DNA of 64,000 nucleotides from Paramoeba atlantica (Eukaryota; Protista; Discosea): NCBI GenBank assembly GCA_977017575.1, contig CDRNVI010000034.1:62001-126000 (forward strand), given 5' to 3'. The notes beneath the pieces were generated by a model. The model was not told the DNA's origin. It saw nothing but the letters and a program-made list of their open reading frames with translations, and did no database searches. The position numbers and the translations under genes were made by a program. This document shows positions 29,913-36,050 of this stretch, piece by piece. Numbering within the stretch: position 1 is the first letter of the stretch; each line of letters starts with the position of its first letter.

Positions 29913-30530
29913 TTAAGGAGTTCTTGTAATCCGCTGTTTAAGGAAGGTTTTTTCCAGGCTCAGAACCAGAACCAAGATAAGCTCGAATAAATTCTTTGGA
30001 AGAGAAGTCAGATCTGGTGTCCCAGTAAGATCATTCTGATGGACGTTAATAATTTCTAATCGTGCAGGAAGCATATTCAGACACACCTCGCCGCTAAATC
30101 TATTCCAGCACAAATAGACCCACTTCATGGTCTCTGGGAGTGCACTTAAGTCCAACGATCCAGTAAAATAATTTTTATGAAGACTTAGCGCAATTAGCTC
30201 GAACGGTAAATTATCTAAGAGTATCTCACCGGATAACTGGCTTTCTTCTACTTCAAATGTTGACAGAGTTTGTGGAAGGTAAGCTAGGTGCAGCGTTCCA
30301 AACAGATTCATTTCATTCCAACAAATATGAGATACCTGACCTTTTTCATTACATTTTACGTCACTCCAGCTGCACGCTGCCGTAGAAGTACACCAGGATG
30401 AATGTGGGGTCTTTACATCACTAATGAGTCGCGCAAGTTCGTATTCTTGAGGTAGATTCGCGAAGCCAACCTTTGCAGGACTAATCAGAGGTGCTCTTGG
30501 AACGTCTTTAGATCGAACGTATAAGTCCAT
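29913..30530 (-). CDS. Short LRR-family protein (C-terminus possibly frameshifted)
   Basis: First ATG at 30530. KVGFANLPQEYELARL..PHSSWCTSTAACSWSDVKC, followed by LRRs. The last 20 aa lose the LRR pattern. Confidence 0.8.
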   Translation of the reverse strand: MDLYVRSKDVPRAPLISPAKVGFANLPQEYELARLISDVKTPHSSWCTSTAACSWSDVKCNEKGQVSHICWNEMNLFGTLHLAYLPQTLSTFEVEESQLSGEILLDNLPFELIALSLHKNYFTGSLDLSALPETMKWVYLCWNRFSGEVCLNMLPARLEIINVHQNDLTGTPDLTSLPKNLFELILVLVLSLEKTFLKQRITRTP

Positions 30531-30879
30531 TTGACTAAAATACACAAGCTCGTATCTGAATATTCAGCATAACCCGGGGAACGGTATATTATTTAAATTG
30601 CTATTTAAATAATATAGTGTTATTTAAATAATATAGCGTTAAAGTTTCTATTTAAATAATATAGCGTTAACGCCAGAATATTTAAATAGGGGAAAAACGC
30701 AAGTAAAAATGTGGTCTTTAGAAGTACGTACGGTAGTTTAAGGGGCTTCTAAGTTGGTATAGAGCACTTAAAAAGTTGTAAAAAATGATTTTAGCCTACA
30801 ATTCTAGCTATTACCAAAGAATTCTAGGTATTTCCAAAGGAATTCCTCGACAAGTAGGCCCGCCATAGTGGGAAAATAA

Positions 30880-33634
30880 GTGTGTCCCGAAGGACACGGA
30901 GCCCATGGGCCTCCCAACACGAATGCTGGGGCGGTGGTACCCCGAAGGGTACGGAGCCCATGGGCCTCGTTACAGAGGATGAACATACAAATGCAACGGC
31001 AAGTGTGCCCCGAAGGACACGGAGCCCATGGGCCTCCCAACACGAATGCTGGGGCGGTGGTACCCCGAAGGGTGCGGAGCCCATGGGCCTCGTTACAGAG
31101 GATGAATATATAAATGCAACGGCAAGTGTGTCCCGAAGGACACGGAGCCCATGGGCCTCCCAACACGAATGCTGGGGCGGTGGTACCCCGAAGGGTGCGG
31201 AGCCCATGGGTCTCGTTACAGAGGATGAATATATAAATGCAACGGCAAGTGTGTCCCGAAGGACACGGAGCCCATGGGCCTCCCAACACGAATGCTGGGG
31301 CGGTGGTACCCCGAAGGGTACGGAGCCCATGGGCCTCGTTACAGAGGATGAACATACAAATGCAACGGCAAGTGTGCCCCGAAGGACACGGAGCCCATGG
31401 GCCTCCCAACACGAATGCTGGGGCGGTGGTACCCCGAAGGGTGCGGAGCCCATGGGCCTCGTTACAGAGGATGAATATATAAATGCAACGGCAAGTGTGT
31501 CCCGAAGGACACGGAGCCCATGGGCCTCCCAACACGAATGCTGGGGCGGTGGTACCCCGAAGGGTGCGGAGCCCATGGGCCTCGTTACAGAGGATGAATA
31601 TATAAATGCAACGGCAAGTGTGTCCCGAAGGACACGGAGCCCATGGGCCTCCCAACACGAATGCTGGGGCGGTGGTACCCCGAAGGGTACGGAGCCCATG
31701 GGCCTCGTTACAGAGGATGAACATACAAATGCAACGGCAAGTGTGCCCCGAAGGACACGGAGCCCATGGGCCTCCCAGCACGAATGCTGGGGCGGTGGTA
31801 CCCCGAAGGGTACGGAGCCCATGGGCCTCGTTACAGAGGATGAACATACAAATGCAACGGCAAGTGTGCCCCGAAGGACACGGAGCCCATGGGCCTCCCA
31901 ACACGAATGCTGGGGCGGTGGTACCCCGAAGGGTGCGGAGCCCATGGGCCTCGTTACAGAGGATGAATATATAAATGCAACGGCAAGTGTGTCCCGAAGG
32001 ACACGGAGCCCATGGGCCTCCCAACACGAATGCTGGGGCGGTGGTACCCCGAAGGGTGCGGAGCCCATGGGTCTCGTTACAGAGGATGAATATATAAATG
32101 CAACGGCAAGTGTGTCCCGAAGGACACGGAGCCCATGGGCCTCCCAACACGAATGCTGGGGCGGTGGTACCCCGAAGGGTACGGAGCCCATGGGCCTCGT
32201 TACAGAGGATGAACATACAAATGCAACGGCAAGTGTGCCCCGAAGGACACGGAGCCCATGGGCCTCCCAACACGAATGCTGGGGCGGTGGTACCCCGAAG
32301 GGTGCGGAGCCCATGGGCCTCGTTACAGAGGATGAATATATAAATGCAACGGCAAGTGTGTCCCGAAGGACACGGAGCCCATGGGCCTCCCAACACGAAT
32401 GCTGGGGCGGTGGTACCCCGAAGGGTGCGGAGCCCATGGGCCTCGTTACAGAGGATGAATATATAAATGCAACGGCAAGTGTGTCCCGAAGGACACGGAG
32501 CCCATGGGCCTCCCAACACGAATGCTGGGGCGGTGGTACCCCGAAGGGTACGGAGCCCATGGGCCTCGTTACAGAGGATGAACATACAAATGCAACGGCA
32601 AGTGTGCCCCGAAGGACACGGAGCCCATGGGCCTCCCAGCACGAATGCTGGGGCGGTGGTACCCCGAAGGGTACGGAGCCCATGGGCCTCGTTACAGAGG
32701 ATGAACATACAAATGCAACGGCAAGTGTGCCCCGAAGGACACGGAGCCCATGGGCCTCCCAACACGAATGCTGGGGCGGTGGTACCCCGAAGGGTGCGGA
32801 GCCCATGGGCCTCGTTACAGAGGATGAATATATAAATGCAACGGCAAGTGTGTCCCGAAGGACACGGAGCCCATGGGCCTCCCAACACGAATGCTGGGGC
32901 GGTGGTACCCCGAAGGGTGCGGAGCCCATGGGCCTCGTTACAGAGGATGAATATATAAATGCAACGGCAAGTGTGTCCCGAAGGACACGGAGCCCATGGG
33001 CCTCCCAACACGAATGCTGGGGCGGTGGTACCCCGAAGGGTGCGGAGCCCATGGGCCTCGTTACAGAGGATGAACATACAAATGCAACGGCAAGTGTGCC
33101 CCGAAGGACACGGAGCCCATGGGCCTCCCAACACGAATGCTGGGGCGGTGGTACCCCGAAGGGTACGGAGCCCATGGGCCTCGTTACAGAGGATGAACAT
33201 ACAAATGCAACGGCAAGTGTGCCCCGAAGGACACGGAGCCCATGGGCCTCCCAACACGAATGCTGGGGCGGTGGTACCCCGAAGGGTGCGGAGCCCATGG
33301 GCCTCGTTACAGAGGATGAATATATAAATGCAACGGCAAGTGTGTCCCGAAGGACACGGAGCCCATGGGCCTCCCAACACGAATGCTGGGGCGGTGGTAC
33401 CCCGAAGGGTACGGAGCCCATGGGCCTCGTTACAGAGGATGAACATACAAATGCAACGGCAAGTGTGCCCCGAAGGACACGGAGCCCATGGGCCTCTCAG
33501 CACGAATGCTGGGGCGGTGGTACCCCGAAGGGTACGGAGCCCATGGGCCTCGTTACAGAGGATGAACATATAAATGCAACGGCAAGTGTGCCCCGAAGGA
33601 CACGGAGCCCATGGGCCTCGTTACAGAGGATGAA
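30880..33634. repeat. 123-bp tandem array, 22 full units plus one internally deleted unit, with a 7-unit (861-bp) higher-order duplication
   Basis: Unit GTGTG(T/C)CCCGAAGGACACGGAGCCCATGGGCCTCCCAACACGAATGCTGGGGCGGTGGTACCCCGAAGGGT(A/G)CGGAGCCCATGGGCCTCGTTACAGAGGATGAA(C/T)ATA(C/T)AAATGCAACGGCAA. Unit 1 starts at 30880 and unit 23 at 33586 (22 x 123). Confidence 0.97.
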
Positions 33635-33797
33635 GTACTGCCAGGCCGGGACCAAGCGAATTGATGCGTGACATTTTCAGGCGTGTAAGATTGTTTATGT
33701 AGATGGAGCTAAATGTAGTAGTTCTACTGGATACTAGAAACAAGTAGTTCAATTATAATTTATTTAGTTTATAATCGTGCTATAGATGTATTGAAAT

Positions 33798-33866
33798 CTT
33801 CACCCTCACACTCCGCCGAATATGGCGGTGCCGGGCTTGGGACCGGTAACAAGCGTGTTTACGAAG
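33798..33866 (-). ncRNA. Twister self-cleaving ribozyme (with P5 stem, no P3)
   Basis: Minus strand: CTTCG-TAA-ACAC-GC-TTGTTA-CCGG-TCCCAAGC-CCGG-CA-CCGCC-ATATTC-GGCGG-A-GTGT-GAGGG-TGAAG. Pairings: P1 CUUCG/UGAAG, L1 UAA plus GAGGG, P2 ACAC/GUGU, P4 CCGG/CCGG with loop UCCCAAGC, pseudoknots CC/GG and GCUU/AAGC, P5 CCGCC/GGCGG. The core CCGGUCCCAAGCCCGG matches the recalled rice twister core. Confidence 0.9.
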
Positions 33867-34220
33867 GAGTGATAATGTACATTACTTAATAGGGAGTACG
33901 AGAGACGCAAGACACAAGAATAATTATAAGTGTGTAACAACTTATAGTTGTTACAGAATATAGTTTTTATAGTTTTCATAGTTTATGGAGATTGCACGTG
34001 CGAACTAACAAGCAGTTTAAACCATTTTCTTTGATTCATTTGTTTGAGCAGTGATCATTTCTTTTGTCTAACAATGGATTTTTCTTGTTTCGTTTTTTTC
34101 CTGTATCTCGACGCCTTGCCGGGGGTGTGTGAGGTTTTCCTATCGCCGAGAACCTACTCTAAGTAAGTTTATATTTGAACAGAAGAGGTATGCATAGATT
34201 GCCTGAAAAGCCACGAACTA

Positions 34221-34649
34221 CCGTATAGCGCCCCCCCCCGAGTAATAGAATGGGTTTTGGGCCAAAATGGCCAAATCTCTGTTACTGGGGGGTGCTTTTT
34301 TGGTAGGCAGAGACCTTTTTTTCATGGGTGCGTTGATTTTCTGCCCAGACAACCCCGCAACTACACCATTCGCTCCCGCGCAACTACCCTCACCCAGCCC
34401 AGCGACCCCCACCCGCCCAAACACCCCCTCCTACCTCCAACCACCCTCCCGAGCCAAATTTCTGCTACTGGGGGTCAGCCCCAGTATGGCCAAATCTCTG
34501 TTACTGGGGGGGGTCTATTACTGGTCGTCTATTATGTTAAGAGAGAAGCAAGATGTACCATATACCCCTTCTCAGTAAGAGACCCCCTTAGTAAGAGAGA
34601 TTTGGCCATTTTGACCCAAAACCCATTCTCTCACTGGGGGGCTACACGG
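34221..34649. mobile_element. TA-target MITE with ~60-bp imperfect TIRs
   Basis: TA|CCGTATAGCGCCCCCCCCCGAGTAATAGAATGGGTTTTGGGCCAAAATGGCCAAATCTCT ... AGAGATTTGGCCATTTTGACCCAAAACCCATTCTCTCACTGGGGGGCTACACGG|TA. Confidence 0.85.
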
Positions 34650-34787
34650 TATGATAACGACAAATAAACGCTCCACATTGGTGCACTTAAATGAATAAAA
34701 ATATCAAAAATAAGGAAACGGATAAATTGTCTTTACTTTAACGGAAATGGCGTCTTGCTGTGTATTTTTGATTTGACACGATTACAT

Positions 34788-35603
34788 TTAAGGACCTTTG
34801 CAAGTAAAATCATTGCCCGTGTAGTCCAACACCGTGAAACTGTGCGCTATCCCATATTTTCCACAGACATCGTAGAATTTGTTGTTGCTTAAGTCCACAT
34901 AAGTCAGTGTCTCGGGGAGCAGCGATAAATCGATACGCCCACAGAGGCGATTCGCTCGAAGATCGACCGTGTCCAACCCGTTGGGTAAGTCACCTAATTC
35001 CACCTCGCCATCAAAAGCATTCTCATACGCTTGAAAAATATGAAGAGATCGGGGTAACTCCGAGAGCTCGCACCGGCCAATAAACCTATTTCGTGACAGC
35101 GCGAGGGTGACCAACTCCCGAGGAAGTTCCCCCCATGAGATGGGACCACTGAAAAAGTTGTTATACAAAACAAGAGAGTGTAACTGCCGTGGGAGAAACC
35201 CAGCGTTGAGTTCTCCCCCTAACTTTGTGTTGGCAAATTCGATGGTACGAAGTGAGGAGGGAAAGTTTTCCCACTCCGGGGTCCCGATGAGCTGGGTTTG
35301 ACGCAGCGACAGCGTGTGGAGCGTCTCTGGAAGGTAACGCCAGGCTGGGCGCCCGGTAAGATACGAACTTTCGAGCGCAATTTTACCCACAGCCTCGAGA
35401 TCGGGTTCGTACCCGCAGTGGATGCCGTACCAGTGAGCGACGGGGTTATCTTCCCGCCACGAGCTGTGCTGTGGGGTCATGTTACGCACAAAGAGGCTGA
35501 GCTGAAGCTCCGTGGACAAGGCAGCGTGGGTAGGCTTCCCACGACGAGATACCGGAATGTCCGCAGTGGAGAGGAATGGTGGGAAGGAAGAAGTGCTGTC
35601 CAT
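34788..35603 (-). CDS. Short LRR-family protein
   Basis: Likely start at 35603 (MDSTSSF..ADIPVSRRGKP..LSTELQLSLF..HSSW..PVAHWYGIHC), followed by about 8 LRRs. Confidence 0.88.
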   Translation of the reverse strand: MDSTSSFPPFLSTADIPVSRRGKPTHAALSTELQLSLFVRNMTPQHSSWREDNPVAHWYGIHCGYEPDLEAVGKIALESSYLTGRPAWRYLPETLHTLSLRQTQLIGTPEWENFPSSLRTIEFANTKLGGELNAGFLPRQLHSLVLYNNFFSGPISWGELPRELVTLALSRNRFIGRCELSELPRSLHIFQAYENAFDGEVELGDLPNGLDTVDLRANRLCGRIDLSLLPETLTYVDLSNNKFYDVCGKYGIAHSFTVLDYTGNDFTCKGP

Positions 35604-36050
35604 GAGATGTGGCAAAAATAATAAGAATTTTTGAATTTGAAAATATAGAAGCAAATGGGGATTGATTTGCGTAGGAAATATTGTGGTCGCACATCGCTGG
35701 ATGTTATGTCCTGTTTGATATTTTTCTGTAAAGGGTTTGTTTACACGTTTAGCAGCATTATACACATCACATGCATTCGACATTGAAGCTATTGCCTTAT
35801 TATTTTACTATTTTCACTGGATTGAAAACTTGTAAACTATCCTACGTAACTGAGTTAACAACGTTTTACAGAGTGCGTAATTCTTTTTCCGACTGTTTAA
35901 CTCGCACTATGCGGCTGTTTAAATACCGATAAAGCTTGCAGCCAAAGCCGCAGTTGTGCTACGAACAAGTTAATAAAAATCCTAAAGATTATTAGTCATA
36001 CTCTCCACTACACATTACACTACAAAGAAAAAGAAAGGGCATGACGTACC

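Follow-up and report, generated by a model that had tools for sequence, protein, structure and literature searches.

The 64,000-nucleotide (nt) window analyzed here (contig C34, positions 62001 to 126000; CDRNVI010000034.1 of the 45.7-Mb, 248-contig Paramoeba atlantica assembly GCA_977017575.1) contains, on its minus strand, a predicted twister ribozyme followed by a spacer and a long array of 123-nt hairpin units. We consider it likely that this segment (33877-30878) represents the 5' leader of a retrotransposon of the tyrosine recombinase (YR) type (i.e., DIRS/VIPER-like) that is non-autonomous and internally deleted and belongs to a family whose members would all be headed by a twister. A preliminary description of the window had suggested that the segment might be a retrozyme-like or short interspersed element (SINE)-like RNA unit. 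That interpretation does not fit the complete copies found elsewhere in the genome, which carry an internal complementary region, a reverse transcriptase (RT)/RNase H remnant, and a defined 3' terminus, nor does it fit the related twister families, which appear to be accompanied by YR and RT frames.

Linkage of the three parts was evaluated across the assembly. The twister region gave at least 40 BLAST matches, and a 161-nt spacer query recovered 15 genomic copies (87 to 100% identity), every one of which lies between a twister and an array (15/15); the array was found on the same contigs as the twister and the spacer. After loci with shared flanks (haplotigs or recent duplicates) had been paired, twister, spacer, and array were counted in the same order and orientation at approximately 10 independent loci with unrelated flanks. 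The 5' boundary CATTATCAC, located at 33877 in the window, is common to all loci of the family (here called family A). This co-occurrence and the shared sharp 5' end argue that the three parts form one unit, as had been supposed, and the spacer, previously given as about 165 nt, measures 163 nt (33797-33635). A stray twister motif beside an unrelated satellite array would be compatible with the single copy in the window and with the lack of a target duplication or tail, but the probability of such chance adjacency is negligible given the constant order at ~10 loci with unrelated flanks and the two-sided flanking of all spacer copies; the co-occurrence test suggested in the preliminary description excludes it. 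One locus (C28/C37) has the array and the 3' part, starting in mid-unit, without a twister and represents a 5'-truncated copy.

The unit had been thought to end with the array, whereas complete copies continue into a tail, a complementary region, an RT remnant, and a 3' end. In these copies, the array is followed by a tail of ~105 nt and then by the first 44 nt of the element in inverted orientation, which are directly abutted by a hairpin and an A-rich segment. The hairpin and the A-rich segment recur inverted as the element's last 124 nt, ~1.6 kb farther on, and the right end reads ..GCAACTCCCT. When the last 115 nt and the first 45 nt were joined into an artificial junction, the reverse complement of the internal module matched it without a break (151/160 positions [94%] in the C26 copy). 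Because the module spans the joined ends, it corresponds to the internal complementary region of DIRS-type elements as defined in the literature (PMC6681497); the module is also present in a related family (family B).

Between the internal module and the 3' end lies a 199-amino-acid (aa) frame that terminates in an RNase H-like ..NPADGLTR motif. A Pfam search with this frame returned no match. A HMMER search of 1.8 billion representatives returned 154 relatives, the full-length members of which are 510 to 700 aa long and contain RVT_1 (25 to 30 bits), with RVT_3 in one, and the ESM Atlas gave weak leads to RT/RNase H clusters from Euglenozoa (score, 0.83). Since its full-length relatives contain RVT_1, the 199-aa frame is interpreted as a deleted RT/RNase H gene, apparently lacking ~310 residues. 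The proposal that the unit is a non-coding part of a mobile element agrees with this remnant and with array periods that break reading frames (see below). In one family-A copy only (L071:1831-2511 on C185, with its twin L072 on C67), the remnant is broken by a 680-bp insertion containing G-runs and short open reading frames (ORFs).

At eight independent 3' junctions, the element ends in ..CTCCCT and is followed by CAGT, CAAT, CATTT, or CATTAT, i.e., the sequence abutting the 3' end is a short core (CA.T) similar to the bases with which the element begins. Neither a target duplication nor a tail was found at any copy whose junctions were examined, and the earlier observation that the window copy has no target-site duplication or poly(A) tail extends to its sister copies. 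Recombination of a circle junction (..CTCCCT-CATTATC..) with a short matching core in the target would leave junctions of this form.

The inverted copies within complete elements could also be taken for the terminal inverted repeats of a DNA transposon (miniature inverted-repeat transposable element [MITE]- or Helitron-like), in which the twister-like sequence would be merely part of the left repeat: the first 44 nt recur in inverted form behind the array, and the 3' half is enclosed by a 124-nt inverted pair. We regard this as very unlikely. The inverted copies abut, forming together an inverted 3'-5' junction rather than outer ends, and the outer ends are not mutual inverted repeats. An RT/RNase H remnant lies inside, and twister, recombinase, and RT are, by coordinates, colinear in relatives. 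Moreover, the twister core is destroyed by changes in the inverted internal copy, while all conserved bases are retained in the 5' copy. For the 44-nt and 124-nt copies, an origin as nested ends of MITEs or Helitrons was likewise considered and dropped, as the pieces constitute one inverted junction with the RT remnant inside.

A self-cleaving motif linked to a highly structured non-coding RNA would also be found in a retrozyme- or viroid-like element that produces circular RNA from ribozyme-cut multimeric transcripts. This explanation is highly improbable for a family with one ribozyme per unit, none at the 3' side, and ribozyme-free array units; no hammerheads were detected in Rfam scans, no long terminal repeats (LTRs) or direct terminal repeats are present, and complete copies have retrotransposon features. 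Features of SINEs were also absent, with no tRNA in the window and no tail or duplication at any copy. The previously noted layout, in which one ribozyme heads a ribozyme-free array, stands; what had been considered a separate architecture is accounted for by a retrotransposon 5' leader with an expanded internal repeat.

Additional evidence for the retrotransposon assignment came from family B. Its twister is ~80% identical to that of family A, with a P3 hairpin that differs in sequence yet pairs and with a closing P1 pair of A-U (G-U in family A). The twister is followed by an unrelated spacer, by arrays of 78-nt and 83-nt units, and then by a complementary module of the same kind as in family A. 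The two halves of the family-A RT remnant gave matches (52% identity) located 1.1 kb apart inside 587-aa frames. These frames share the strand of the family-B twisters and lie 4.8 to 5.4 kb downstream of them, or 10 kb downstream in two copies because a long interspersed element (LINE) was inserted. Strong RVT_1 matches on the opposite strand, known by coordinates only, lie inside these two family-B copies (C45:208679-209467 and C54:204237-205025) and account for the greater distance there. In most family-B copies (e.g., L018, L019, L020, L021, L023, and L029), the 12 nt before CATTATCAC read (A)CGATAAAGATA, with further flanks differing; the motif does not precede family-A copies. It represents either a target preference or a 5' end that is 12 nt longer and extends outside the complementary region.

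Genome searches with Pfam domains gave positional hints of a recombinase. For PF00589 (Phage_integrase), 11 matches had a twister core 3.0 to 8.5 kb upstream on the same strand, 0 had one downstream, and 2 had one on the opposite strand. Around the closest relatives (C16 and C29), the YR matches were weak (E value, 0.002) and known by coordinates, and the order in both, by coordinates alone, was twister, YR, RT N terminus, and RNase H C terminus. The search with PF00078 was dominated by LINE-type RTs (the best 150 of 1,851 candidates were scored).

The twister motif (33866-33798, minus strand) consists of P1 (CUUCG/UGAAG), the U^AA step, P2 (ACAC/GUGU), the T1 dinucleotide GC, P4 (CCGG/CCGG) closing the loop UCCCAAGC, a P3 hairpin of 5 bp, and the T2 segment GAGGG. 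Its unconstrained minimum-energy fold contained exactly P1 (5 bp), P2, P4, and P3, and the stems follow the order of type P1 (Rfam clan CL00120), in which both strand ends lie at P1. According to a review, P3 is present in 78% of twisters and P5 in 1%, cleavage occurs at a U-A step, and a double pseudoknot (T1 and T2) connects loop L4 with the internal loops (PMC6154101). No Rfam family matched the window at its gathering score, and a first E-value scan of the window gave a local Twister-P5 match only. On a 101-nt slice, RF03160 (twister-P1) aligned end to end (1-68/68; 28.2 bits; E value, 1e-4) with all conserved blocks placed; the U-A step and the following A, the GC after P2, the loop UCCCAAGC, and GAGGG were aligned at a posterior of ~1.

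Comparison among copies was consistent with this anatomy. The conserved nucleotides are invariant or nearly so, and 95.4% of cells in the helices were paired over 17 distinct copies (94 to 96% per helix), compared with 33 to 45% when partners were slid. Two P3 pairs show compensated changes from C-G to U-A between the families. The pseudoknot helices T1 (G15-C34 and C16-G33) and T2 (three C-G pairs) were 94% and 98% paired, respectively, and since these pairs hardly vary, they demonstrate complementarity rather than covariation. The core CCGGTNNNAAGCCCGG had 95 exact matches in the genome, compared with 9 for a reversed control, and a single occurrence in the window, where the twister is identical to the family consensus. 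By its modeled anatomy, the motif is a twister, with a score below the formal Rfam threshold, and cleavage is predicted between U33861 and A33860. The suggestion that the ribozyme is placed where the 5' end of an RNA would be defined is supported by the position of this predicted cut, 17 nt inside the sharp start of the element.

Three loop variants of the twister core recur genome-wide, UCCAAAGC in ~30 copies, UCACAAGC in ~14, and UUCCAAGC in ~17, and these mark further subfamilies; any alteration of the CCC that forms T2 would call for a compensating one in GAGGG. The majority of the pairs of twister and recombinase belong to the UCCAAAGC group.

Tandem Repeats Finder delineated the array at 30878-33619 (period, 123 bp; 97% matches), with array-like sequence starting from 33634. 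There are two unit variants, and the last 14 units form a 7-unit higher-order repeat. Each unit contains three hairpins capped by UUCG, and its two GCCCAUGGGC palindromes pair into a long stem. The minus-strand fold of the unit (-54.4 kcal/mol; z score, -4.4; none of 200 shuffles as strong) was more pronounced than that of the plus strand (z score, -2.3), confirming that the array is structured on the transcribed strand. In family A, the array was found at 12 loci with 1 to 22 units and periods of 119, 121, 123, 178, or 314 bp, and haplotig pairs differ in copy number; the window array is the largest of the family. The 78-nt unit of family B has a palindrome (CCUCGAGG) and a C(UUCG)G hairpin, its fold is not significant (z score, -0.4), and the 12-mer GUCCUUCGGGAC is common to it and the 123-nt unit. 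We infer that the array belongs to the leader as a hairpin module prone to expansion and does not constitute a functional RNA gene of its own; it may have a role in RNA dimerization or packaging. Behind the single array unit of the C40 copy (L015:1850-2150), a different insertion is present that comprises a hairpin (..GTTGAAAACTACCACCGCGTTTAACGA..) as well as a (CCCCCCCTGGA)n-like repeat; the haplotig partner of this copy on C39 instead shows a deletion into the RT remnant.

Three frames across the array are open for 865 to 929 codons, which could suggest a protein of 41-residue repeats whose mRNA is processed by the twister. This is scarcely credible. The long frames are an artifact of unit length (123 = 41 x 3), and openness of both strands is what one would anticipate of a GC-rich unit with a length divisible by three. 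The periods of 119 and 121 bp in sister arrays break any frame, copy number ranges from 1 to 22, and the Pfam matches of the array frames were spurious sums in which no single stretch passed.

Contig C69 carries a homologous site that lacks the element. C69:39954-40854 and C69:43489-45420 are 99% identical to window positions 29980-30880 and 33872-35800, respectively, and the upstream leucine-rich repeat (LRR) gene is 98% identical on C69. Between the matching blocks, C69 has 2,634 bp in which genome searches detected no twister core, spacer, or array (all spacer and array candidates were scored). The shared sequence reaches 6 bases into the element on the 5' side (CATTAT, the element's first 6 nt at 33877-33872, with flank homology extending to 33872) and overlaps the array by 3 bases on the other side. 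Homology of the window to sister copies ends at 30878, inside an array unit, and no element tail, internal complementary region, or 3' terminus was found anywhere in the window. A scenario in which the element integrated at CATTAT and a later deletion took part of the array, the remainder of the element, and host DNA of ~2.6 kb that C69 would have retained is slightly favored; everything 3' of the array was probably lost in one deletion. The window copy is a 3'-truncated, dead fragment, the counterpart of the 5'-truncated C28/C37 copy, and on comparison of the two contigs it appears to be polymorphic between haplotypes. C69 also has extra insertions of ~1.3 kb (C69:37154-38482, at window 29588) and ~1.07 kb (C69:38879-39954, at window 29982), one of which lies inside or next to the LRR-like ORF 29913-30545. 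These insertions suggest dense transposon polymorphism between haplotypes.

Several points weigh against the assignment to a twister-headed YR retrotransposon. No autonomous master element with >60% identity to the family-A RT remnant was found in the genome search, and the Gag/YR/RT content of full-length elements is suggested by coordinates and weak Pfam matches. The twister alignment (28.2 bits) lies below the RF03160 gathering score of 67.2, a shortfall that arises because the P5 stem of the model is absent here and a P3 hairpin is inserted. Both self-cleavage and the transcript are predictions, and the deletion history of the window copy is reconstructed from the C69 flanks and the interval size. 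Finally, a crude test of flanking ORFs (5 on the same strand and 5 on the opposite strand) revealed no orientation bias, so read-through from host gene clusters would not be a general requirement.

The lack of orientation bias also counts against the idea of a domesticated leader, in which the twister and array would shape a host polycistronic RNA, e.g., by cutting between LRR genes or stabilizing the downstream RNA. The sense-strand location between two LRR genes, the identity of the twister to the family consensus, and the size of the array, the largest of the family, are in favor of domestication. Nevertheless, the 99%-identical C69 lacks the unit and array length varies freely between haplotigs, and we therefore judge domestication to be unlikely.

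Features of the window copy are listed in Table 1. Almost all long ORFs of the window are on the minus strand, an arrangement compatible with polycistronic gene organization of the kinetoplastid-like kind, and their domains, which are eukaryotic, include C2H2, SURF1, PCIF1_WW, RF-1, and many LRRs with LRRNT_2. The twister-spacer-array unit lies between the LRR genes 34788-35783 (-) and 29913-30545 (-), in sense orientation to both. For the LRR protein upstream of the unit, >2,200 first-look candidates were found genome-wide (the best 121 of 2,268 were scored), a number that suggests a very large LRR gene family, and LRR-like ORFs occur in the flanks of several twister elements. Upstream of the element, 34231-34700 contains repeated and inverted modules (GGCCAAATCTCTGTTACTGGGGGG-like, C- and G-runs, and an 18-bp CCCGCCCAACCACCCCCA repeat) that resemble small inverted-repeat elements. 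Short tandem and inverted TATTTAAATAATATAGCGTTAA repeats at 30593-30688, between the truncated array and the downstream gene, are probably of the type called TA-MITE in the preliminary description.

Table 1. Components of the window copy of the element (window coordinates)
Feature	Position	Strand	Evidence or remark
Element 5' end, first 17 nt (CATTATCAC...CGU)	33861..33877	(-)	Precedes the predicted cut; holds the P1 5' strand (33866-33862)
Type-P1 twister motif with P3 hairpin	33798..33866	(-)	Predicted cut U33861/A33860; RF03160 alignment and minimum-energy fold
Leader spacer, unique, AT-rich, 163 nt	33635..33797	(-)	15 genomic copies
Array of 123-nt hairpin unit, 22.3 copies	30878..33634	(-)	Tandem Repeats Finder and sister copies
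Truncation junction	30878..30880	(-)	Array homology ends at 30878 and C69 flank homology begins at 30880; 3-nt overlap (CTT)

These observations are compatible with the following model. The element would be transcribed, within the window co-directionally with the gene cluster around it and possibly as part of a host polycistron. Once folded, the twister would cut at a point 17 nt into the element, ahead of transcription of the complementary region, freeing a 5'-OH RNA that begins at A33860 (the AAACACGC step). First-strand cDNA would then lack the complement of the 17 nt, and its 3' end could anneal to the internal complementary region, which would serve as both splint and template: the lost 17 nt would be restored and the ends joined into a circle. 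The recombinase of an autonomous relative, acting in trans, would integrate the circle at a short CATT-like core.

More generally, canonical twisters may be the 5'-end device of a YR retrotransposon group, in which the complementary region repairs 17 to 18 nt and the leader hairpin arrays are functional; we propose this tentatively, at somewhat less than even chances. Functional leader arrays, with their palindrome and UUCG hairpins, would be, e.g., dimerization or Gag-binding platforms. If true, this arrangement would solve the end-maintenance problem of retroelements in a new way, and it offers a testable model of how a recombinase retroelement escapes host transcripts yet rebuilds its full-length DNA. 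As regards annotation, one candidate "new structured RNA gene" drops out, and the array becomes a variable internal repeat of a transposon leader.

Twisters are widespread, yet hardly any biological role in eukaryotes has, to our knowledge, been assigned to them. Hepatitis delta virus (HDV)-like ribozymes occupy the 5' ends of R2 and of L1Tc, a kinetoplastid element, where a self-cut on the 5' side frees the element RNA from the host co-transcript, much as predicted here. The ribozyme class and the element class are different, and those elements lose essentially nothing on cleavage.

A close parallel, and the one documented role of a twister in eukaryotes among the papers found, is Perere-3, a flatworm non-LTR element headed by a variant twister (PMC8501958, 2021). 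In both cases, a retrotransposon has a twister-class ribozyme at its very 5' end, which is transcribed along with it and sets the element RNA free by cutting itself (in our case, predicted). Perere-3 uses target-primed reverse transcription, and target duplications supply the 5' strand of P1. In contrast, the whole of P1 is inside the element here, 17 nt would be lost on cleavage, the internal complementary region retains a spare copy, and the footprint of integration resembles that of a recombinase, with a short shared core and no duplication.

DIRS1-type elements have terminal repeats and an internal complementary region (PMC6681497, Background). They resemble the present family in that its relatives appear to be associated with YR and RT/RNase H genes and target duplications are absent, but here the complementary region is in the 5' leader rather than near the 3' end, and the left arm is half a ribozyme. 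No ribozyme in DIRS elements was described in the papers searched. VIPER and TATE, both present in Bodo saltans and trypanosomatids, share their host group with the present family and have the gene order Gag-like, YR, RT/RNase H (PMC6681497). The YR-then-RT order of our relatives agrees by coordinates. VIPER and TATE have split direct repeats, in place of which the present family has an internal complementary region, and SIRE, like the family described here, is a short non-autonomous derivative with the ends of a coding element (PMC6681497). The word "ribozyme" is absent from that paper.

Retrozymes, both LTRs of which carry hammerheads and the RNA of which accumulates in circular form (Cervera et al. 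2016, PMC4918200), are also non-autonomous retroelements with a small self-cleaving ribozyme; the present family differs in having one twister and no LTRs. A full-text literature search that combined twister with either tyrosine recombinase or kinetoplastid yielded no relevant paper, and no paper on the family was found. The family adds a new form to the ribozyme-processed retrotransposons and does not constitute a retrozyme-like RNA element of a new kind; in it, a canonical twister heads a retrotransposon class different from that of Perere-3, in a kinetoplastid-like protist.

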